Shown piece by piece: positions 725-52,442 of a stretch of 64,000 bases of DNA (positions are counted from its first letter, which is position 1; each line of letters opens with the position of its first letter). This DNA comes from Hyaloraphidium curvatum SAG 235-1 (taxonomy: Eukaryota; Fungi; Monoblepharomycota). The notes below the pieces were generated by a model. That model worked only from the letters and a program-made list of their open reading frames with translations, ran no database searches and was not told where the DNA came from. Location: contig JAIVFI010000020.1 of assembly GCA_025558095.1 (NCBI GenBank), forward strand, positions 496,001 to 560,000. Reading direction: 5' to 3'. A program made the position numbers and the translations under genes.

Positions 725-2872
725 TTACAAGGCCCGTTTGACGGCGAGGTACAGGCGATCAAACTCGTCCCGATCGCGCACGACTCTGCTGGCCTTGTCG
801 TAGAGGGCCGCCGCCCGGGTCAGGTCCTTTGCGACGCCGAGCTCAAACTTGATGTAAGAGAGCCACACGCCATGGTCGGTCCTGAGGCTGTCCAGTGTAC
901 CTTCGAAGTAGCGCCGAAGCCGCGAAATGTCTCTCGGCGCGACGAATTCCGCGTCGTTCCAGTCGAACGCAGGGTCGATCGGGGACCCAGCGACCGACCC
1001 CGCAATCTCTCCCCGGAGGCACCGTTCGTAGAAGGCTGCGCTGCGGGTCTTGGTCCTGATCAAAGCGTCAACGACGCTCCTCAGCTTTTCCACACCGCCA
1101 GCGTCCCGAGCCCAATCCAAGTAGCGCGAGACGGCCAAGTCGTCCGAAGCAGTGCCCTGGAGCCCGTGCCGCCCGCACGCTTCCTTCATGGCAGCCTCGA
1201 CGTCCTCGTGGTCCACGTTCTCAGCGGCGGAGGTCAGCTTGTTTAGGTAAACCTCCCAGACGGGCCAGCTTTGCGCACGGTCGAGTTTCCGCAGTGCCGC
1301 CTTGAGCGAAGCCCGCCAGTCCTTGACGGAGCCACCAGACAGATCGGCCTCCATCCGCAGCTTCCAAAGTCCTGCGGCAGCCGGCAGCGCCGCGACGCCG
1401 CGGGCAACCACGTCGTCCGCCGACTCGTCCCCCTCGGAGAGGAGTGCGGTGTCGGCCGCCCATTCCGCATAGCCTTCCTCCGTCAGCATACTTGCCGCTT
1501 CCGCGGCACGGCATGCTCGCAAAAGAAGGATGTTCAGATAGCGTACGAGGTTGGGCTCGTCGGTCCTGGTCCGCATATCGCGGAGGAAACCGAAGAAGCG
1601 AGAGTACAGCTCGGCCGATGGCCGTTCTCGTATCGCCTCTTGGAAGACGGCGATGGATGCTCTGAGCTTCGAAGGAAAGGATTCGTTGTCGGTCGCGACG
1701 CCGAGCAGCTCGGATGCCGCGACGACCTCCACCGCTTCCGGATCTGCCCAGAAATCGCGGCGTACCGAGTCAAGAACCTCCTCCACACCGGACCGGAGGG
1801 AAGCAGACTGAAACAGCTCCAAGAAACGAGCCCTGAATTGCAGATCCCCAGGGATAGCTGGCAAGGCGGGCCGAGAAACGTCAGGGCGGCGGGACGGCGC
1901 CAGACAAGACACCTCACCACGAACGGCGTTCCGGTAGACAATCCTCGGAATCGCCCCGTCCAGCATTGCATTCTCCGTCACGGTTGGCGAGGAGGCGGCG
2001 CCGTCTTCCGCAAGAGCTTCCGTTTCGTTGTCGGCAGGACCGCTAGGTAGCTTGATAACGCCGTCGTCCGCATCCGATCCCGCGTCCTCATCGTCCGAGT
2101 CGGCGTCCTTCATGTCCTGGTCTCCATCACAAGCGCTCTCCCCGGCCGGAGGAGACTTCTTCCCAAACAGGATCTCCCTCCTTGCCCGGATCTTGTCCAG
2201 GAAACGCAGCTCCAGCTTGAAGTACTCGTGCCAAAGTTCGTGAAGTTCAGGGTTCATCCGGATGGCCCGCTGCAGCAGCACCCGCGCCGCACTGATGTTG
2301 GTGTTGGACTCGAGCTCCCACATGGCCGCCTTCACCCAGAAGACGGGCTTCGCCGGGTGCAGCTGCACCGCGCGGGCATACGCACGTCCGAGAGCCTTGT
2401 TGGCCCCGACGGACTCTGCCCAGTCCAGGTATTGCACCCAAAGGTCCACGTCGCCAGGGAACTTCTTCAGCGCCCGGGCAAAGATGAAGTGGATGCGTTG
2501 CCGGATCGAGTGGTCGCTGACGGAACCCTTCCACTGCGGCCGCTCCTTTTTCTTGCCCGTGCGCTCGTCCGTTGCGGCGAGGGCGGCCAGGATCCTCTCC
2601 TTCCGTTTCTTGCGGAGCTGCTCGAGGTTCGTCTCGTAGTCGATGTACCTCAAAAAGTCCGGCTTCTTCGATATCCGCCGGGCCAAAGCAAACTCGTGCT
2701 CCTTTCGCTTCTTCACGATGGCCTTTATCTCGGTCTGCCAGGCCACGGGCTGAGGGTGAGCGTTCGAGAGGGGCTGCGCGACTTGTCCAACCTTTGTGAA
2801 CAGCCCCTTCTGCAGCAGGTCGTCCAGCTCGGGCAGCATGGCCTCGAGCTGCACGTACGTATTGTCCCCCAT
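725..2872 (-). CDS. UTP6: U3 snoRNA-associated protein 6 (HAT repeats)
   Basis: MGDNTYVQLEAMLPELDDLLQKGLFT.EIKAIVKKR..HEF...DFLRYIDYETNLEQLRKKR is the Utp6 N-domain, followed by HAT repeats. Two short in-frame introns lie inside the ORF. Confidence 0.9.
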   Translation of the reverse strand: MGDNTYVQLEAMLPELDDLLQKGLFTKVGQVAQPLSNAHPQPVAWQTEIKAIVKKRKEHEFALARRISKKPDFLRYIDYETNLEQLRKKRKERILAALAATDERTGKKKERPQWKGSVSDHSIRQRIHFIFARALKKFPGDVDLWVQYLDWAESVGANKALGRAYARAVQLHPAKPVFWVKAAMWELESNTNISAARVLLQRAIRMNPELHELWHEYFKLELRFLDKIRARREILFGKKSPPAGESACDGDQDMKDADSDDEDAGSDADDGVIKLPSGPADNETEALAEDGAASSPTVTENAMLDGAIPRIVYRNAVRGEVSCLAPSRRPDVSRPALPAIPGDLQFRARFLELFQSASLRSGVEEVLDSVRRDFWADPEAVEVVAASELLGVATDNESFPSKLRASIAVFQEAIRERPSAELYSRFFGFLRDMRTRTDEPNLVRYLNILLLRACRAAEAASMLTEEGYAEWAADTALLSEGDESADDVVARGVAALPAAAGLWKLRMEADLSGGSVKDWRASLKAALRKLDRAQSWPVWEVYLNKLTSAAENVDHEDVEAAMKEACGRHGLQGTASDDLAVSRYLDWARDAGGVEKLRSVVDALIRTKTRSAAFYERCLRGEIAGSVAGSPIDPAFDWNDAEFVAPRDISRLRRYFEGTLDSLRTDHGVWLSYIKFELGVAKDLTRAAALYDKASRVVRDRDEFDRLYLAVKRAL

Positions 2873-3753
2873 GGCTGCAGATACGCTGGAATCCGCGCCA
2901 GCGCGCCAGAAAGAGCTTCGACGACGTTTGTTGTCTGTTGTTGGCCTCGCGCGCCGTATGCGCCGAACTTTCACAGCTCTTTTGAAGCGGACGCAGAAAG
3001 GACAGCGATGCCGGAGCCATGGCGTCCGCTGCAGTATACGCATCCGAGATCTATAATGTACACATTTCGGGAAGGTTGCCCGTTGGTTGGCTCTGGCGCC
3101 TCATTGTTCGCCTGTATCTCCCGTCCCCGTCCCACTCTCTGCCGTGGCTGCCCAGTGCGTGCTGGCAACCCGCGAATCGCGACATACATGTTGCAGATTG
3201 AGGGTTTCGGCGACAAGATCGGATCCCGATCAAGCCTCGGTCCGGCAATCGAATGTCGAAGAAGCCGTCGGAAGGATGGCGCCTCCCAACTTGCCGCCTC
3301 GCAACTCGGTCGGGAAAAACCATTCCATCCTTTCAACACCCCGCCGAGTCGCAACGGCCGCGAGGTCGGTATCGCGGGAACATCTTAGGATCATTGCACA
3401 TCAGACCGGCTGGGCCTCGAGGGCGCTGCCGCCGAGCGATGCGGGGCCTGGCGGCGTTTTCTGCCGTGATCCGCGGGCCGGCCGGAAGTCTTCCCCGGAC
3501 TGTGGACGGGCCTCAGAGTGGTCCACGGCAACTGGAAGACCCTCTCTCGGGCCCGAGATGTGCCCTGGCAGGGGCTTGCGGGCGTGGGGCAAGGGCTCGG
3601 TCCTGCTTCGTCGGCAGGGGTGTCCCGATTCCCGAGCCATGGCTAATCGGTTCCATCCCTTCACTCATTCGACGTCGCATCATCTTGGATCTCGCTCGCC
3701 GTTCGCCTGCGCACTGCCCTTTGGTTCCTCAAAACCAGGCGCTTGGTTGAACA

Positions 3754-5191
3754 ATGGTGAAGGACACGAAGCTGTACGATGTTCTCGAGGTCGCCGTCGG
3801 AGCGTCGGACAACGACATCAAGAAGGCGTACAGGAAGCTTGCCCTGAAATACGTTGGTTTTTGCGCATGCCACGGCGTCGGCTGTGTTCTGACCACGTGT
3901 GATCGCCGTGCAGCACCCCGACAAGAACCCGGACGCTGGCGAGAAGTTCAAGGAGATCTCCCACGCGTACGATGTCCTTTCTGACCCCAACAAGCGGGAA
4001 GCCTACGACAGATGTGGGTGAAACTCTGCGGTATCCCCGCGGGATCGCAGCTGACCGGGCCTCAGATGGCGAGGAGGGCATCGGCGGCGAAGGCGGCGGC
4101 ATGTCGCCCGAGGACCTCTTCTCGCACTTTTTCGGCGCCAACATCTTTGGCGGGCGCGGCCAGGGCCGCCAGAGCGGCCCGCGGAAGGGGAAGGACATGG
4201 CGCACGCGCTGAAGGTGTCCCTGGAAGATCTCTACCGCGGCAAGGTCTCCAAGCTCGCGCTGCAGAAGCAGATCATCTGCCCCAAGTGCGAGGGCAAGGG
4301 CGGGAAGGAGGGCGCGTCCAAGACGTGCCAGGGATGCCAGGGCCGCGGCATCAAGATCATCATGAGGCAGATTGGACCCATGATCCAGCAGCTGCAGCAG
4401 ACCTGCCCCGAATGCAACGGCGAGGGCGAGGTCATCAAGGAGAAGGACCGCTGCAAGAACTGCAACGGGAAGAAGGTCGTCCAGGAGCGCAAGGTCCGTA
4501 GTCCGGTCGAGCGCTGCCGGAATCGGGCCTGCTCTGATCCACGCCCACGCAGATCCTCGAGGTCCACATCGACAAGGGCATGCAGGATGGCCAGCGGATC
4601 ACCTTCTCGGGCGAGGCGGATCAGTCGCCCGGCATGGTTCCCGGCGACATCATCATCGTCATTGAGGAGAAGGAGCACCCCAGGTTCAAGCGGAGGGGCG
4701 ACGACCTGTACTACCAGGTCAAGATCGACCTCCTCACCGCGCTCGGCGGCGGACAGTTCAACATCCGCCACCTGGACGACCGGATGCTGGTCGTCAACAT
4801 CATCCCCGGCGAGATCATCAGGCCTGGTGGGTTCATCCCCGCGACCGGCGATGATCGGTTCATGACCTCCTCCTTTCTAGGCGACATCAAGGCCATCACG
4901 GGCGAGGGCATGCCCGTCTACCGGAACCCCTTCCACAAGGGCAACCTCTACGTCAAGTTCGAGGTCGAGTTCCCTCAAACCGGCTGGTTCACCCCGGAGC
5001 GCCTCCAGGCGCTCGAGGTGGGGCTGCCGCCGCGCCAGCCGCTCCAGGAGTCCATGGACGGGCTCGAGATCGAGGAGGTGGTGCTCTCGAACGTGGACCC
5101 TATGCAGCACGAGCGGTCGCAGTACAACGGCAACGCGACGGAGGACGACGACGAGAACGGCGGGCCGGGCGTGCAGTGCGCAAGCCAGTAG
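3754..5191 (+). CDS. YDJ1: Type I Hsp40/DnaJ co-chaperone (Ydj1/DNAJA)
   Basis: J-domain with HPD assembled across intron 3853-3913, G/F region, four CxxCxGxG motifs, C-terminal CaaX box CASQ; four introns. Confidence 0.95.
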
Positions 5192-38822: not shown

Positions 38823-39584
38823 ATGGCCCGCCTCCGCGCGGTCCCTGTCCTGCCTCTGCGGCCCAGCGCCCGCCGGCTCGCCACGCGGCCCGACCCGTAC
38901 GCGGTGCTCGGCGTGGCGCCCTCCGCGAGCCCCGACGAGATCAAGCGCGCCTTCTACGCGCGCGCCAAGGAGCTGCACCCCGATCGCGCGGCGGGCGACC
39001 ACGACGCCTTCGTGCGGCTGCAGGCGGCGTACGCGCGCGTGGGGTCGCCGGCCGCGCGGCGCGAGTGGGAGCGCGAACGCCGCGGGGCGCCCGGGGCGGG
39101 ATACCCGGGGCACGCTTCGCACGGACGATCCCACGGCTATTCGAGCCCCGCCTACGCCGATGCCTTGAAAAGGAACGCATCGCGCGAGTGGGACCCCTTC
39201 GCGGACCCGGACCTGGACCACGGCGAGCGGCTGCGGCGCGAGGCCTACGCCAACCACCGCTCGGCGACGCACGACCGCCCCGCCGCCGCCCAGGCCGGCG
39301 CATTCACCCCGCTGACCTCGTTCCTGGCCGTCTTCTCGGCGCTGGCGCTGTCGCTGTCGCTGTTCCACCTGACGCGGATGCGGAGCGTGGTGGCCGAGGC
39401 GGTCGAGGTCAAGCACCGCGAGAGCGTGGCGTACCTGAACGAGAGCAGGCTCAAGGGCCGCAGGGGGAGCGAGGGCGCGCTGGGGGAGGATGCGAGGCGG
39501 CGCAAGAGGGCGGAGAAGGGGGGCGGGGCGGCGCCGGACGGCGCTCCGGCGGAGCGTTCGCCCGCGGGGGCCGAGCCGGCTTGA
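38823..39584 (+). CDS. J-domain protein with C-terminal transmembrane helix (probably mitochondrial)
   Basis: Arg-rich presequence, DPYAVLGV...EIKRAF...LHPD, hydrophobic segment FLAVFSALALSLSLF. Confidence 0.82.
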   Translation: MARLRAVPVLPLRPSARRLATRPDPYAVLGVAPSASPDEIKRAFYARAKELHPDRAAGDHDAFVRLQAAYARVGSPAARREWERERRGAPGAGYPGHASHGRSHGYSSPAYADALKRNASREWDPFADPDLDHGERLRREAYANHRSATHDRPAAAQAGAFTPLTSFLAVFSALALSLSLFHLTRMRSVVAEAVEVKHRESVAYLNESRLKGRRGSEGALGEDARRRKRAEKGGGAAPDGAPAERSPAGAEPA

Positions 39585-40091
39585 ATCTCGGATCTGCCGT
39601 GGACTGCTTGACCTAGGGACTCGAACGAGCACCGCCGCGCCCCCTTGCTTTGCGCTTCGGCGGATGCACGGATTGGTGCTGCATATACCCTTCGACCTGC
39701 CATCTTGGAACCCTGAGACCGCTCGGGGGCGTGCTTGTGGACAAACGCGACCGATCAGCAGCAGCATTTCACGGATCCAGTCTCCCGCTGGTCATGCCCT
39801 TGGTCTTCGCGGCCGATCCTATGCCATTTCGCTCCGTCGCCGATCGCCGAGACACGGAAAATGCAATCTTGCAGTGTAGTGTTCGCACTGTGGCGACGCC
39901 GTCGCCGGACACATGGCTTCCCTGGCTTCGTCTTGCGTCGGAACTAGCTGCTCAGGCCGCGATCGAATACAGGAACCCCGAACCCACGCTGGTCCCTGTC
40001 CCCTGTGTTGTTGCTGATCCGCGAGCCGAGCACAAGCACCCTCATCTCCCACTCACCCGCCCGCCCCGCGTCCTCCTCCCCCGCCGCCAAA

Positions 40092-41632
40092 ATGGACAAG
40101 GTCAAGGAGGTGCGCCCGCCCGCCGCCCGCGCCCGCCCGCGCAGCCCCGCCCGGCACCCCTTCCCCGCTCACCGCCCGCACCGCCCCTCCGCGCCCCGCC
40201 CCTCCGCGCCCCGCCCCGCCCCAATCCGCGGACGCCTTCCCGCCCCGCCCCGCCGATGCCGCCAGAAAATGGAGAAGCTCCGCATCGAGTCGGACGCAAA
40301 CCTCGCGCGCGCCGCAAAGGCCGAGGAGCGCGTCAAGGCCGCGGAGGGCGAGCTGTCCGCAAAGGACACGGAGATCGCGGGCCTCAAGAACAAGATCGCG
40401 CTGATGGAGCAGGATATCGCGAGGAGCGAGAAGAGGGTCGACGAGGTCCGTGGACCGCGGAGCGGGGGCGGGTTTGGGGGTCGTTCGGGCCAACGAGGGC
40501 GGCGCGACTTGCGCACCGGATCCGGCGCGGGGGAGGATTACGGGGGCGCAGGCTGCGGGAGGACGCGTCCTTTGTTCCGGGGAAGGGCGGGGTCGCCGCC
40601 CAGGCGGAGGCTGCCTTGCTGGGGACGCTCCCGCGGCGCACGCTCCCCGCAGCCCCCTCGCGCCGCCCCCTTTCCCTCGTCCTCCCCATTTTCCGTTTAG
40701 GAGCACCCCGTTCTTACCCGCTTGCGCGCCCGCAGATCATCAGCCGCTCCCAGACCGCCGAGAAGGACCAGCAGGACATGAGCGCCCTGCAGCGCAAGAT
40801 CCAGATGCTCGAGAAGGAGGTGGCCGACAAGGAGGCCCAGATCGCCAAGGTTCGTTTCCTCTCCCCGGGACCACTGTTTTTTTCGGGGGGGGGTTCGGGG
40901 GCGTCGATGGCGGCGGGGCTGACGCCGGGGCCAGCTCAAGTCCCAGACCGCCACGCACGGCCAGGAGGAGGCCCAGATCGACGAGCTGAGGCGGAAAATC
41001 GCGCTGCTCGAGTCGAATCTGGAGGCCAAGGATGCGCAGATCGAGAAAGTACGTCCGCGGCCTCCCGTGCGGGGGGCGGGGCTGACGCCCCGCGGCGCGG
41101 CAGCTCAAGGGGCAGTCGCAGTCCAGGGGCGCGGACGAGAACGCGATGGGGGAGCTGAAGCGCAGGATCGCGCTGCTGGAGCGGGATCTGGAATCGCGCG
41201 ACGAGACGATCGCGAAAGTGGGGGGCCCCGTCCCGGGGCGGCAGCCGGCGGCGCTGACGGTCCCGTTCACACGTCCCGGCAGGTCAAGTCGGCCAAGGCG
41301 GACGCGGAGAAGGATTCGAGCCTGGTGGAGAGCCTACAGCGCAAGATCGCGCTGCTGGAGGGGGACCTGGAGAAGAAGGAGAAGGAGGCCAAGGATTCCT
41401 CGGCCAAGTGGGTCCCCTCCCGTGCGGCACACCCCAGGACGGCCCACTGACGCCCTCCGCGCACCGCAGGGCCCGGGCGCTCGAGCTCTCGGCCGAGACG
41501 GCCGAGCGCAAGGCGGAGCAGCTGGAGAAGGAGCGCGGGAAGCTGGAAAAGGCCAACGAGGAGCTCGAGGTCAAGCTGGCCGAGGCCAAGAAGGAGCTCG
41601 AGGCCACGCTCAAGGGGCTCGAGGACCTGTAG
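40092..41632 (+). CDS. TPM1: Tropomyosin with three internal 38-aa cassette exons
   Basis: Exons 40092-40109, 40266-40445, 40736-40849, 40935-41048, 41104-41217, 41283-41407, 41470-41632, all with GT-AG introns. MDKVKEKMEKLRIE start, LKNKIALME, LQRKIALLE, and LEDL end are typical of fungal tropomyosin. Confidence 0.9.
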
Positions 41633-41807
41633 GCGCGGGAGGAATATACCCTATTCGTGGCGGGCCGCTCCTTCCGTTCCATTGATTCGCGCCTGGCTCG
41701 TTCGCTACAGCAGGCATACAGGTCCAAGAAAGAACTGCCACGGGCTGCAATGACAGCCATCTGATCGTTGAACGTCAGCGTGGTGTGTCGTGCCAGCCGT
41801 TTGCGTG

Positions 41808-43052
41808 TTACACGCTCGACGCATCAACGTCCAGTTCCGGAAAGGTCTTCCGCATCCAGTTGCCCCACGGGTACCAACCCAGCTTGAGCCTACCGAGTGA
41901 CTGTCCGAGCGATAACCAGAAAGCGAGCTCGTCCCTGACTTCCGAGGTGAATTCACGCAGTTCGTGTTCGTCGCGCCACGGGTCGAGGAATTCGTCGACG
42001 AAAGGGTAAAATATGAACTCCGCTGAGCTTCGACGGAGCACGTCGCCGATGCGGGCGAGATCCGACGGGGGCAGCCCTTCGAGGCGCATCGACAGGATGC
42101 TGAGGGTTCGCAGCGCTGGCGGCAGACCGAGCAGGAAGGACGAAGGCGTGAATGCGCGGAGGTCGATCTTTTGGGTTGCAGGCAGGCGCAACAGGTCTTT
42201 CCAGTCCTCCTCGTCGCCGATTTCGGACCACTCGTCAACATCGGCTCTTTCTATGGCCAAAGGCCGGAAGGATTCGAAGGTGAGCATCGGCGAAATGCCC
42301 ATCTCGTTACCGTATCGCCAAGTTCGGATCTTGGCCACAAACGGCTCAGGAAAGTGCTCGGCATCAACAGGGAGGTCCTTGATTTCGCAATCGATGGTCT
42401 CAAGCATGGGACAACCAGCAAGGAAGGCCTCAAACAACTCCGTCACGACGGTCCCTGTGTAATCCAAGTGCTTCAATTGCGGCAGGCGTATGGGATCGCG
42501 GTACTGGCCATTGTTGTACTGGAGCTCCAGCCGGTTGAGATTGGCCAGCGATGGGCTGAGAAGCACCGATGCAATCTCGTAAGGATAGTCGGGAGCAAAG
42601 GACAGCTCCTCGAGCCGTTTGCACGCAAGCACCAAAGGCTCGATAAGCTGAAAACTGACGCCCGCGTCCGTGATATCGAGCTTCTTCACCACCATGAGCT
42701 TATCTTTCGCAGCGCGTTTGCCGAGAAAGCGCTTTAGCGCCCTTTCCGTGTTGAATGCTTGGGACACGGTGAACTCCTCGAGGAAGCGCGGCAGAACCAG
42801 CTCGTAGAAGGACTTGCACGTCAGCATCATGTACAGCAGAGTCCGCGATCCGGGCGGGAAGTAGCTCGCAATCTTAAGCACGATTTCGGAAGGGAGGAAA
42901 GGAACGGAGTCGTCCGCCGAGGAGCCCGTCGACGTCCCTTTCGCGTTCCCAGCGCCGAGCGCGGCAAGCTGGGCGCGGAGGGCAGCGACCTCGTCGCGCA
43001 GTGAAGCGTTGTCCTCGCGGAGCTGCGCGTTCTCGGCAGCCAGCGCGTCCAT
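41808..43052 (-). CDS. Coiled-coil + F-box + LRR-like protein, intronless (copy B)
   Basis: Collinear paralog of 32722-33972 (MDALAAENAQLR, LPSEIVL, LPRFLEEF, GCP.LETIDCE, KIRTWRY, DELAFW). Confidence 0.8.
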   Translation of the reverse strand: MDALAAENAQLREDNASLRDEVAALRAQLAALGAGNAKGTSTGSSADDSVPFLPSEIVLKIASYFPPGSRTLLYMMLTCKSFYELVLPRFLEEFTVSQAFNTERALKRFLGKRAAKDKLMVVKKLDITDAGVSFQLIEPLVLACKRLEELSFAPDYPYEIASVLLSPSLANLNRLELQYNNGQYRDPIRLPQLKHLDYTGTVVTELFEAFLAGCPMLETIDCEIKDLPVDAEHFPEPFVAKIRTWRYGNEMGISPMLTFESFRPLAIERADVDEWSEIGDEEDWKDLLRLPATQKIDLRAFTPSSFLLGLPPALRTLSILSMRLEGLPPSDLARIGDVLRRSSAEFIFYPFVDEFLDPWRDEHELREFTSEVRDELAFWLSLGQSLGRLKLGWYPWGNWMRKTFPELDVDASSV

Positions 43053-49603: not shown

Positions 49604-49887
49604 GCGGAACCGCAGAGAGTAGCTTGAATACCAACCGAAATCGTTTAATTTACGTGGCTTATTTGATCATTGCTGCTTATTGAGCCTTTGGTTTTCTTGT
49701 CGGAGTGGTGACCGCGAGGGGGTTGGTGCCCCATCCCCCGCGAAGCTGCCCATCCCGGCTCCAGACCCCGGGAGCGACCAGAGCACGCAGACTGCAGTAC
49801 AAATGAAAAGTCAACGGCCCGAACGGCCGACGTGTCTTCGTGAGCACGCAGGAAACCCCTTGCCGGCAAACAAGTGCCTCGACAACA

Positions 49888-51879
49888 ATGGGCGACGCCC
49901 GGCCGGCGGAGCCCGGCGGCGGCCCGCCCCCGTCGCTGCCGGGCGTGGGCGCGCTGTTTGGCGGCGGGGGAGCCCGGCCGCGGCCGGCTGATCCGTGGGA
50001 CGCGTGGCGCCCGCGCGATGGCCCGCCGCCGCTGCGGCCCGCGGGCACGTGGCCGCCCGACGCGGCGCGGAGCATCGAGCGCGCGCTCGAGATCGGGCAG
50101 CAGAGCAGCGCGTACGGCGGCTACGGCGCCGTGTACGCCAACGCGCAGGGCACCGTGCGGCCCGCGATCGCGACCAACGCCGGCCCGTACGCCGCGAATG
50201 CAAATCAGGCGATGTCGCAGCGGCCCGTCGGCACGCCCCAGGTGGCGGTCGGGCCGCCGCCGGGCTCCCCGCCGTCGGCGCCCGATTTTTCCGGGTGGGG
50301 CTCCGCGTGGGCGCGGACGCAGCAGGTGCACCAGGCCATGCAGATGCAGCAGATGCAGCAGGCGCACCTCGCCCAGCAGGCGCGGCAGGGCATGATGCCG
50401 CCTGCCGGCGCGTCGCCCTCGGGCCTGCCGTCGCCGACGGGGCAGTCGCCGACGGGCCAGGTGTCGCCGACCAACCAGACGCCGCCGCAGATGCTGCCGC
50501 CGGGGCCGCAGATGCCGCAAATGAACCAACTGCCGCATGGCATGCAGCGCCCGCTGATGCCGATGAACTACAGGCCGCCGTCGTCTTTCATGCCGGGCGG
50601 CCGGCCGCCGATGCCTCCGTTCTACCCTGGACTGCCGCCGGGACAACTGCCGCCCGGACAACTGCTTCCGGGGCAACAACCCGGGCAGCTGCCGCCCCTC
50701 CAAGGACACCCATCGCAGCCGCTGCAGGGCCGGCCCTCCGGGCACCCCGCTGGCCGGCCGCAGGGACCCGTGCACTTCCCGCCGGGCTTTTCCATCACCC
50801 CCGCGCCGCGACCCCTGCCCCCCGTGCGCGGCGGCCCCATCCCCGGCACCCCCGGCGCCCCACCCTACCCTCCCCGCCCCGTTGCGCAGCCTGGCGCCCG
50901 CCCCGCACGCCCTTACCAACCCCGCCCCCCGCGCCCCCGCGCTGCCCCGACAAAACCCCGCCCCCCGTCCTCCCCCCCGCTCTCTCTCCCGCGGCGCAAC
51001 GACCCCTTCCCCGAATGTCCCCCCGACGACCCCACCGCCGTGGAGCTCCCGCACCCCATCACCCCCGAGGACATCCGCCGCCGCCTGCACGCGGACGGCA
51101 CCTTCGACGCCCTCCGCCGCCGTGCCCTGGCGGACCTCATGGCTTCCCCGCTGGGCATGCAGCTCCGCGACCTCGTCGCGGAGATGGCGCGCACCTTTGC
51201 TTCGCAGCGCCCCGGCGCGGACCGCGCGCGGCTCGAGGCCGAGTGCGCCGCGTCGCTCGGTTCGGGCTTGATGGCCGTGGACGGCGTGGCGGACGGGGTG
51301 GCGGGGTTCGTGGCGCGGTGGGCGGCGGGGATCAAGGGCACCGTGGCGGCGTCGCTGGATTCGCTGGCGGGGTTCCCCGTGGGGGGCGGCGGCAGCCCGA
51401 CGGTGCGGAGGCGGTGGCCCGGGGGTGTGCCGGGGGCCGAGTCGCCGCTGCGTTCGCCGCGGCCGGATGCGGAGCGGGAGGAGGAGAGGAAGGAGAGGGA
51501 GAGGGCGGAGAGGGAGGCGCTGGCGGTGAGGGAGAGGGAGGCGGCGGCGGTGCTGAGGGAGCCGCCGACGGGGGAGCTGGGGAGCTCGCCGTCGGCGGGG
51601 CCGGTGCCCGCGGCGGCGGTGCCCGAACCGCTGCCGCTGGTTGCGGAGGAGAAGCCCGCGGAAGGGGCGGATGTGAAGATGGAGGCTGTGCAGGGCGAGG
51701 AGTCGGCCGCTGCGCCGGGAGGTGCCGCGGACACGGGGTCGGAGGCGACAGAGTCGGACCCGCCTTCCGCGGGGGCGGCCAAACGGGCCGCCGAGGACGA
51801 GGGCGAGCAGGACGGCGAGGCAAAGAGGAGGAGGGTCGAGGAGGGCGAGGGTGAGGGCGATGGGGCGGGGACGGGTTGA
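49888..51879 (+). CDS. Pro/Gln-rich protein with BOD1/Shg1-like (COMPASS) domain
   Basis: TPEDIRRRLHADGTFDALRRRALADL resembles the Shg1/BOD1 G.FD.LRR motif; long low-complexity flanks; bipartite NLS-like KR...KRRR. Confidence 0.62.
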   Translation: MGDARPAEPGGGPPPSLPGVGALFGGGGARPRPADPWDAWRPRDGPPPLRPAGTWPPDAARSIERALEIGQQSSAYGGYGAVYANAQGTVRPAIATNAGPYAANANQAMSQRPVGTPQVAVGPPPGSPPSAPDFSGWGSAWARTQQVHQAMQMQQMQQAHLAQQARQGMMPPAGASPSGLPSPTGQSPTGQVSPTNQTPPQMLPPGPQMPQMNQLPHGMQRPLMPMNYRPPSSFMPGGRPPMPPFYPGLPPGQLPPGQLLPGQQPGQLPPLQGHPSQPLQGRPSGHPAGRPQGPVHFPPGFSITPAPRPLPPVRGGPIPGTPGAPPYPPRPVAQPGARPARPYQPRPPRPRAAPTKPRPPSSPPLSLPRRNDPFPECPPDDPTAVELPHPITPEDIRRRLHADGTFDALRRRALADLMASPLGMQLRDLVAEMARTFASQRPGADRARLEAECAASLGSGLMAVDGVADGVAGFVARWAAGIKGTVAASLDSLAGFPVGGGGSPTVRRRWPGGVPGAESPLRSPRPDAEREEERKERERAEREALAVREREAAAVLREPPTGELGSSPSAGPVPAAAVPEPLPLVAEEKPAEGADVKMEAVQGEESAAAPGGAADTGSEATESDPPSAGAAKRAAEDEGEQDGEAKRRRVEEGEGEGDGAGTG

Positions 51880-52442
51880 GGTTGGTGATCCGGGCTCAAT
51901 GTAGCCGCCAGTGCCAAGAAAAGGGGCAAACGGCCATGGCGATCGACGAGCGGTAATTGTCCTGAGCAAGACGAAGCTACCTGCCGACTATCGGTGTCCG
52001 CCTATCGCAGATGGCTCCGCCAACGCAGGGGCTCCTTTGAGAACACGGGCAGGTAGTCGGCCAGATCGATGCCCACCTTGGGCAGATCATCGTGCACCGC
52101 ACTCGTCCACGCCGGCTGCCCCGCGAGCCGGTTTGCTGCCACAAACCTCGCCAAAGCATTGTACAGGCATCCGTGAACCGGGCCGGGCCGCGCTGCAGCT
52201 TGGTGCTGTATTTCCTCAGGCCCGAGAGCAGCCAAGTCAAGGCCGAGGGCCGCGCGTGGTCGCTTCGCTGTTGCACGCATCGCGTTGCAGAACATGACAT
52301 CACACTCCTATTGCATGCCTGTGGCCTCGGATGCGTCGGGAGGAAGTCAGTCAGACAGGTCCGCAAATCCGTCAGTCAAGAGTTTCAGTCAATCACGGGG
52401 GCAGCGATAGCGCCCCGGTCAGGCACCGTTCTCATCGCCATC

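Follow-up and report, generated by a model that had tools for sequence, protein, structure and literature searches.

In Hyaloraphidium curvatum SAG 235-1, one tropomyosin gene appears to yield in-frame mRNAs for three proteins of 275, 237 and 199 aa, and we consider it likely, at roughly 70%, that this single gene does so with a constitutive exon 3 and with exons 4 and 5 as cassettes. The gene lies on the forward strand at 40092-41632 of the window, by which we mean the whole 64,000-nt stretch of DNA analysed here (contig JAIVFI010000020.1, positions 496,001 to 560,000). Reading of the sequence together with a script gave a gene of seven exons, with a CDS of 828 nt encoding 275 aa followed by TAG. 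Its features, in window coordinates, are as follows.

40092-40109, + strand: exon 1, 18 nt, encoding MDKVKE, with the start codon at 40092; the same six residues are found in the uncultured relative L005
40110-40265, + strand: intron 1, 156 nt, GT..AG, by chance in frame and stop-free
40266-40445, + strand: exon 2, 180 nt, 60 aa, the N-terminal tropomyosin segment
40446-40735, + strand: intron 2, 290 nt, GT..AG, the long intron preceding the repeat exons
40736-40849, + strand: exon 3, 114 nt, a 38-aa unit, present in every contig seen
40850-41282, + strand: the stretch spliced out as one 433-nt intron in the 3>6 isoform, comprising introns 3, 4 and 5 and exons 4 and 5
40935-41048, + strand: exon 4, 114 nt, a 38-aa unit, a cassette that the 3>6 junction leaves out along with exon 5
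41104-41217, + strand: exon 5, 114 nt, a 38-aa unit, a cassette, with a weak-looking donor, GTGGGG
41283-41407, + strand: exon 6, 125 nt, which opens with the ancestral 38-aa unit of the repeat
41470-41632, + strand: exon 7, 163 nt, the C-terminal segment, which ends in ..TLKGLEDL and closes with TAG (41630-41632)

All six introns are of the GT..AG type and measure 156, 290, 85, 55, 65 and 62 nt. The original prediction, which was made from the letters of the window, had described exons 3, 4 and 5 as units of exactly 114 nt in phase 0 that resemble one another and the start of exon 6. Our script confirmed this, finding phase 0 at both ends, AG/GT flanks and 32-47% amino-acid identity among the three exons and the first 38 aa of exon 6. 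The sum to which the prediction had drawn attention was likewise exact, exons 1, 2, 6 and 7 totalling 486 nt, or 161 aa plus a stop. The 290-nt intron ahead of the repeat exons, which it had singled out for its length, was also found to be long (292-401 nt) in three uncultured relatives (L005, L010 and L011). At the DNA level, a 34-nt core (..CGCAAGATCGCGCTGCTGGAG.., family D1) occurs in four copies of 71-91% identity, spaced by 199, 169 and 179 nt. The window as a whole has a G+C content of 65%, and at 725-3043 on the reverse strand it also carries a 772-aa UTP6 ORF that is 95% identical to a protein of H. curvatum, in Monoblepharomycota, and 33% identical to the next named match, from Gonapodya.

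The product of this gene is, as judged from its sequence, a tropomyosin, and binding to F-actin and head-to-tail polymerisation are predicted for it. Family and homology searches were run exon by exon. Exon 2 matched Pfam PF00261 at profile positions 7-66 (E 2.7e-9), and a slightly longer exon 2 stretch scored 42.1 bits against a PF00261 cut-off of 38.6 when all six frames of the assembly were scanned. Exon 7 matched profile positions 191-242, reaching the profile end, and exons 3 and 6 gave weak matches at about 29-67. The N-terminus (MDKVKE/KMEKLRIE) and the C-terminus (..TLKGLEDL) both agreed with chytrid and Gonapodya tropomyosins. Among solved structures, exon 7 aligned weakly (E 0.0095) to residues 111-161 of two 161-aa tropomyosins, 8puz and 9ff9. 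The same kind of search with exon 2 returned a phage needle coiled coil as its sole match and was uninformative.

We found a single tropomyosin locus in the genome (assembly of 31.9 Mb in 55 contigs). The other PF00261 match in the assembly was one 748-aa coiled-coil ORF, on a different contig and below the cut-off, and searching the assembly at the DNA level, with 40266-41632 as query, recovered the locus itself and no second copy. A second gene copy as the source of the short forms was thus excluded, as the assembly holds one locus only. Neither the word-indexed nor the exhaustive search of representative proteins returned a public protein model with exon 2 at about 100% identity, although another protein of this organism did come up among public sequences, and the gene may lack such a model.

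Evidence on splicing came from one public run (X1, 2018), the only one found to hold the locus, which was used in the form of Logan contigs, compared in 31-nt words and mapped on 39800-41900. X1 contained 0.44 of the sampled words, which is close to the exonic share of the stretch, and its depth over introns 1 and 2 was zero. We took X1 to be cDNA because its contigs are spliced, the RNA label of the run being itself a guess. Comparison of the contigs with the locus showed zero mismatches and no other letters over about 2 kb. All the predicted junctions (1>2, 2>3, 3>4, 4>5, 5>6 and 6>7) were found in X1 contigs: junctions 1>2 (40109>40266) and 2>3 share one unbranched 1404-nt contig with exons 1, 2 and 3, and junction 6>7 joins 41407 to 41470.

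Besides this complete series, X1 contained two skipping joints, so that three alternative upstream junctions (3>6, 4>6 and 5>6) meet at exon 6. Joint 3>6 connects 40849 to 41283 (contig joint 40847>41281, cut +2), has GT..AG borders, removes 433 nt and has a depth of 1423. Joint 4>6 connects 41048 to 41283, again with GT..AG borders, and removes 234 nt, leaving out exon 5, at a depth of 326. The contig with the full-inclusion junction 5>6 has a depth of 2226. Contig depth flowing into exon 6 therefore amounts to 2226 + 326 + 1423 = 3975, against 3662 on the exon 6 contig, and the flow out of exon 4 to 2226 + 326 = 2552, against 2870 entering it. Depth of the junction contigs suggests shares of about 56% full-length mRNA, about 36% without exons 4 and 5 and about 8% without exon 5, which are rough values, contig depth being a poor measure of abundance and the junction sides only 25-30 nt long. 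The isoforms themselves are combined from pairwise junctions, no contig covering a whole isoform.

These results bear directly on the original prediction, in which inclusion of the three repeat exons would change protein length in steps of 38 aa. The stepwise change stood for 275, 237 and 199 aa, through the 3>6 and 4>6 contigs, but the 161-aa form was unseen. Of the three different 199-aa forms that had been proposed only one was seen, the one that retains exon 3. The joints expected from skipping that starts at exon 2, namely 40445>41283 for full skipping and 40445>40935 or 41104, were absent from the X1 contigs, and altogether none of 2>4, 2>5, 2>6 and 3>5 was reported among these contigs, which lose rare variants.

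We further evaluated the coiled-coil periodicity of the four possible products with our own script for heptad phase. Each segment had one dominant phase, with a step of +3 once per 38-aa unit in every isoform, as fits 38 = 5x7 + 3. The steps ran 0>3>6>2>5 in the 275-aa protein, 0>3>6>2 in the 237-aa protein and 0>3>6 in the 199-aa protein, and the putative 161-aa product gave a clean heptad track too. The register, a point raised in the original prediction, is therefore kept in all four products. Fungal tropomyosins carry a stammer, with which the +3 step agrees (PMC3805550). Core columns 1, 15, 18, 22, 25, 29 and 36 were hydrophobic in all units, and the unit borders lie at equivalent positions, hydrophobic column 1 following column 36, indicating that deletion of a whole unit recreates a native-like junction.

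Relatives were found by an exhaustive profile search with exon 2, followed by look-up of the encoding contigs. A word-indexed protein search with the same exon gave one match only, and the exhaustive search reached Gonapodya and chytrids. The original prediction had pointed to exon structure in related early-diverging fungi, and the same layout of one unit per exon recurred in the three uncultured relatives (G+C 0.53-0.54), whose exons measure 18 (seen in L005), 180, 114, 114, 114 and 125 nt. Their unit exons have GT donors and AG acceptors, and the introns between units are 53-97 nt long. Alignment of intron 2 across the four species revealed no conserved block, hidden exon or internal-promoter-like element. 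Taken together, the exon sizes and phases, the RNA junctions and the layout in three relatives indicate a repeat-exon pattern far beyond chance. This conservation of layout does not prove selection for skipping, because the 38-aa period of the protein alone would keep exon size and phase.

Positional orthologues were 57-90% identical (65-73% for exon 2, 63-74% for exon 3 and 82-90% for exon 6), compared with 32-47% between paralogous units, indicating that the duplications are older than these species. The cassettes mostly matched their positional counterpart best, and exons 4 and 5 of L010 and L011 matched each other's counterparts about equally. Nei-Gojobori estimates of dN/dS, given where dS could be estimated and with synonymous sites near saturation, were 0.08-0.22 for exon 3, 0.10-0.41 for exons 4 and 5 and 0.18-0.42 for exon 2. 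As the cassettes fall in the range of exon 2, they are constrained coding sequence and not decaying duplicates. The case in which exons 3-5 would be dead duplicates, foreseen in the original prediction, consequently does not hold, since all three occur in X1 transcripts with ratios of 0.08-0.41. Intron identity was dropped as a neutral yardstick, because gapped global alignments of short introns inflate the values.

A tree of the units, based on 38 columns only and partly resolved, set the exon 2 unit apart from all others (100/100) and grouped the exon 3 orthologues (98/93), marking exon 3 as an older, separate repeat lineage. Exon 6 fell with Gonapodya unit 4 and with unit 5 of the metagenomic locus L009 (94/92). 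Exons 4 and 5 formed one group (92/94) in which exon 5 branched from within exon 4, which makes the two skipped exons the youngest duplicates. It is plausible from these sequences that an animal-like length was reached independently, because the 38-column tree places the units with the period-3 unit of fungi and exon 5 inside exon 4.

We therefore propose a scheme in which a 38-aa actin period inside the 161-aa fungal coiled coil would have been duplicated three times, each duplicated unit being retained as a separate 114-nt phase-0 exon. Exon 3 would be constitutive and exons 4 and 5 would be cassettes: the exon 3 donor would be spliced to the acceptor of intron 3 or to that of intron 5, and the donor of exon 4 would occasionally use the intron 5 acceptor as well. 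Lengths would then follow 161 + 38n with n = 3, 2 and 1, giving 275, 237 and 199 aa. Tropomyosin length corresponds to the number of actin subunits covered per molecule, and on the precedent of yeast Tpm2 and Tpm1 and general knowledge of tropomyosins the isoforms would span 7, 6 and 5 actin subunits. On this scheme the shorter mRNAs would be translated, the isoforms would differ in function and their ratio would be regulated.

The acceptor regions of the three introns suggest how the choice could be made.

Intron 3: 12 nt from branch CTGAC to acceptor, pyrimidine share 0.35
Intron 4: 18 nt from branch CTGAC to acceptor, pyrimidine share 0.47
Intron 5: 25 nt from branch CTGAC to acceptor, pyrimidine share 0.65

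Of introns 3-5, the last has the acceptor with the most favourable branch-point distance and the highest pyrimidine content. The exon 3 donor may accordingly be presented with a competition between a poor near acceptor, that of intron 3, and a better far one, that of intron 5. Efficient removal of the short intron 4 (donor GTACGT) would keep exons 4 and 5 mostly together and would leave joint 3>5 unseen. No intronic element conserved across the species was found, nor did any inverted repeats pair intron 3 with intron 5 so as to loop out exons 4-5; the sole inverted repeats (I1 and I2) sit within intron 2. An alternative first exon of the animal kind was considered and rejected, intron 2 being unconserved in sequence and having zero RNA depth.

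Several other explanations of the short mRNAs were weighed against this scheme. The protein could be a constitutive one of 275 aa, the skipped mRNAs being splicing noise without selected function that arises from the occasional joint removal of three short tandem introns, which resemble one another and have duplicated branch regions. Introns 3 and 4 do have a common 18-nt branch-site block (D7), and the branch point of intron 3, 12 nt from its acceptor and with a poor pyrimidine tract, makes mis-pairing plausible; exon skipping is generally rare in fungi, and the long form of L009 has no introns between its units, so that skipping is not needed for a long form. Set against this, the skipped junctions are not rare by contig depth (1423 and 326 beside 2226 for full inclusion), all products are in frame with the heptad kept and with lengths in the natural 161 + 38n series, and only some of the possible skips were seen (no 3>5 and no joint from exon 2 beyond exon 3), unlike what random pairing would give. 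We regard noise as unlikely on this evidence. We also think it improbable, more so than noise, that each of the three repeat exons is included or skipped independently, for products of 161, 199 (in three kinds), 237 and 275 aa, as originally predicted. Exon 3 is of the same 114-nt, phase-0 make, the flanking exons encode exactly 161 aa, the 161-aa product keeps its heptads and contigs may miss rare forms, but exons 1-3 lie on one unbranched contig, the joints that would bypass exon 3 or run from exon 3 to exon 5 are missing from the contigs, and exon 3 belongs to its own, older repeat lineage.

Allelic copy number was a further candidate: a second allele that lost exons 4-5 through unequal recombination could be collapsed in the assembly or missing from it. 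Unequal crossing-over can act on tandem repeats whose introns are similar, and many early-diverging fungi are reported to be diploid. Yet three forms need three alleles, or one such allele and splicing in addition; the assembly has one locus, the X1 contigs gave no second haplotype over about 2 kb, and the joints fall exactly on GT..AG exon borders, all of which makes this explanation very improbable. We give still less credence to the skipping joints being artefacts, made by template switching of reverse transcriptase or PCR between the repeats or by misassembly, even with identical short words of up to 16 nt in the units and short sides to the junction contigs. Template switching puts joints inside shared words, not at GT..AG borders. 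The first bases are CTCAAG in exons 4 and 5 and GTCAAG in exon 6, and switching would leave C in place of G where the downstream exon begins; no mismatch was reported. The longest exact word between any two exons, at 16 nt, is shorter than the 31-nt words used, which excludes repeat collapse in the assembly, and the depths run to hundreds and thousands and are balanced over the splicing graph. Alternative use of exons 4 and 5 behind a constitutive exon 3 is thus the reading that we prefer.

Beyond the choice of exons, the three lengths may form a splice-set molecular ruler, in which forms spanning 5, 6 and 7 actins would mark different actin structures or life stages and in which length isoforms would have originated independently of animals; we advance this tentatively, as somewhat less than probable. 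Isoform choice is thought to confer functional identity on actin filaments. If the ruler reading is true, its mechanism, internal period cassettes, is not known to have been described for any tropomyosin. Proteins of 5, 6 and 7 periods with identical termini would also offer a natural series for the effects of length on binding, cooperativity and sorting. The locus is a clear case of abundant in-frame exon skipping in a short-intron fungus, it shows a coiled coil lengthening step by step as exons were duplicated, and its layout of one period per exon is conserved in several Monoblepharomycota-like species.

In the full-text literature searched we found no report of alternative splicing or of period cassettes in a fungal tropomyosin. 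Three points are new here: a fungus with one tropomyosin gene combines length isoforms made by splicing with the 38-aa step, the mechanism relies on internal cassette exons that each hold one period, and the range extends up to the animal-like seven periods. The production of animal isoforms by alternative RNA processing and the 38-aa length step of budding yeast are classical. To our knowledge, length isoforms from one gene have hitherto been confined to animals, where they arise by alternative promoters, and fungi, as far as we know, have been thought limited to fixed proteins of 161 or 199 aa from separate genes.

Among fungal tropomyosins, S. pombe Cdc8 and the 161-aa tropomyosins of chytrids (Nowakowskiella KAJ1559414 and Chytridium lagenaria KAI8854600) resemble the Hyaloraphidium protein in their N-terminal MDK[IV]KEK..LRIE, their C-terminal ..LK.LEDL and their heptad stammer, but they have four periods and no repeat cassettes, and we know of no length isoforms in them. 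Closer in length is the protein of Gonapodya sp. JEL0774 (KAJ3339805, P0012), which has two extra 38-aa units of the same repeat family in a 237-aa core, preceded by a 120-aa N-terminal extension that is probably spurious. It differs in having one unit fewer, and in that one unit is a 114-nt exon while an additional intron interrupts the other. The metagenomic protein P0004 (L009) is, like the Hyaloraphidium protein, a long tropomyosin with three extra 38-aa units, but these run together in one ORF, which leaves no way of skipping them one by one.

In animals, tropomyosin length is set by alternative promoters and first exons, the remaining alternatives being mutually exclusive exons of equal size, and the heptads are continuous. 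In budding yeast, an internal duplication of 38 aa sets Tpm1, at 199 aa, apart from the 161-aa Tpm2 (PMC12440208). The S. cerevisiae pair thus shares the 161 + 38n series with Hyaloraphidium, the 199 aa of Tpm1 being the length of the shortest Hyaloraphidium isoform seen, but it is encoded by two separate intronless genes, whereas Hyaloraphidium uses one gene, n up to 3 and exon skipping. Alternative RNA processing diversifies tropomyosin into about 40 mammalian isoforms from four genes (PMC12440208, PMC3805550). Animal TPM genes (about 284 and 248 aa) are like the Hyaloraphidium gene in that one gene gives isoforms about one actin period apart; unlike them, Hyaloraphidium drops internal period-sized cassettes, up to two periods, and carries a stammer-like shift in each unit.

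Inspection of the assembled contigs from the one public cDNA run holding the tropomyosin locus (window 40092-41632, plus strand) showed that intron 1 (40110-40265) was spliced out. Because this 156-nt intron is in frame and stop-free, a 231-aa ORF (40005-40700) runs uninterrupted across it. The contig covering exons 1-3 (1404 nt) reached ~800 nt upstream of 39800 (window ~39000-40091), and this upstream extension is either a 5' UTR of at least ~1.1 kb or a fusion with an adjacent transcript.

Within the long intron 2, we observed two inverted-repeat pairs, at 40452-40507 and 40658-40682, with arms of 16-20 nt and 75-88% complementarity. These repeats could fold the intron and thereby draw its two ends together; in the relatives, this sequence is not conserved.

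On the 3' side, a 2014-nt RNA contig started in exon 6, passed the tropomyosin 3' end and continued for ~1.5 kb (41309-41900, on to ~43385), spanning a convergent ORF:

41808-43052, minus strand, convergent ORF of 414 aa, judged by eye to be leucine-rich or F-box-like

The stop codons of the tropomyosin gene and of this ORF are separated by only 175 nt, and the two transcripts therefore probably overlap at their 3' ends. Elsewhere in the window, G+C content peaked locally at 75.5% (50001-52000) versus ~65% window-wide, and both strands at 49645-51969 held long, mutually overlapping ORFs.

Neither a word-indexed protein search nor an exhaustive representative search returned a protein near-identical to exon 2, while a different protein of H. 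curvatum did come up in protein search at 95% identity. These search results suggest that a public model for the tropomyosin gene may be missing.

Comparison with related genes showed intron turnover among the relatives. Among the genomic loci of three uncultured relatives sharing the exon layout, L011 had lost the intron separating exon 6 from exon 7 (4039-4320), and an additional intron lay within the exon 7 region of both L005 (2130-2196) and L010 (~4499-4557). Likewise, in the long tropomyosin of Gonapodya sp. JEL0774 (KAJ3339805), which carries two extra repeat units, one repeat unit was interrupted by an additional intron.
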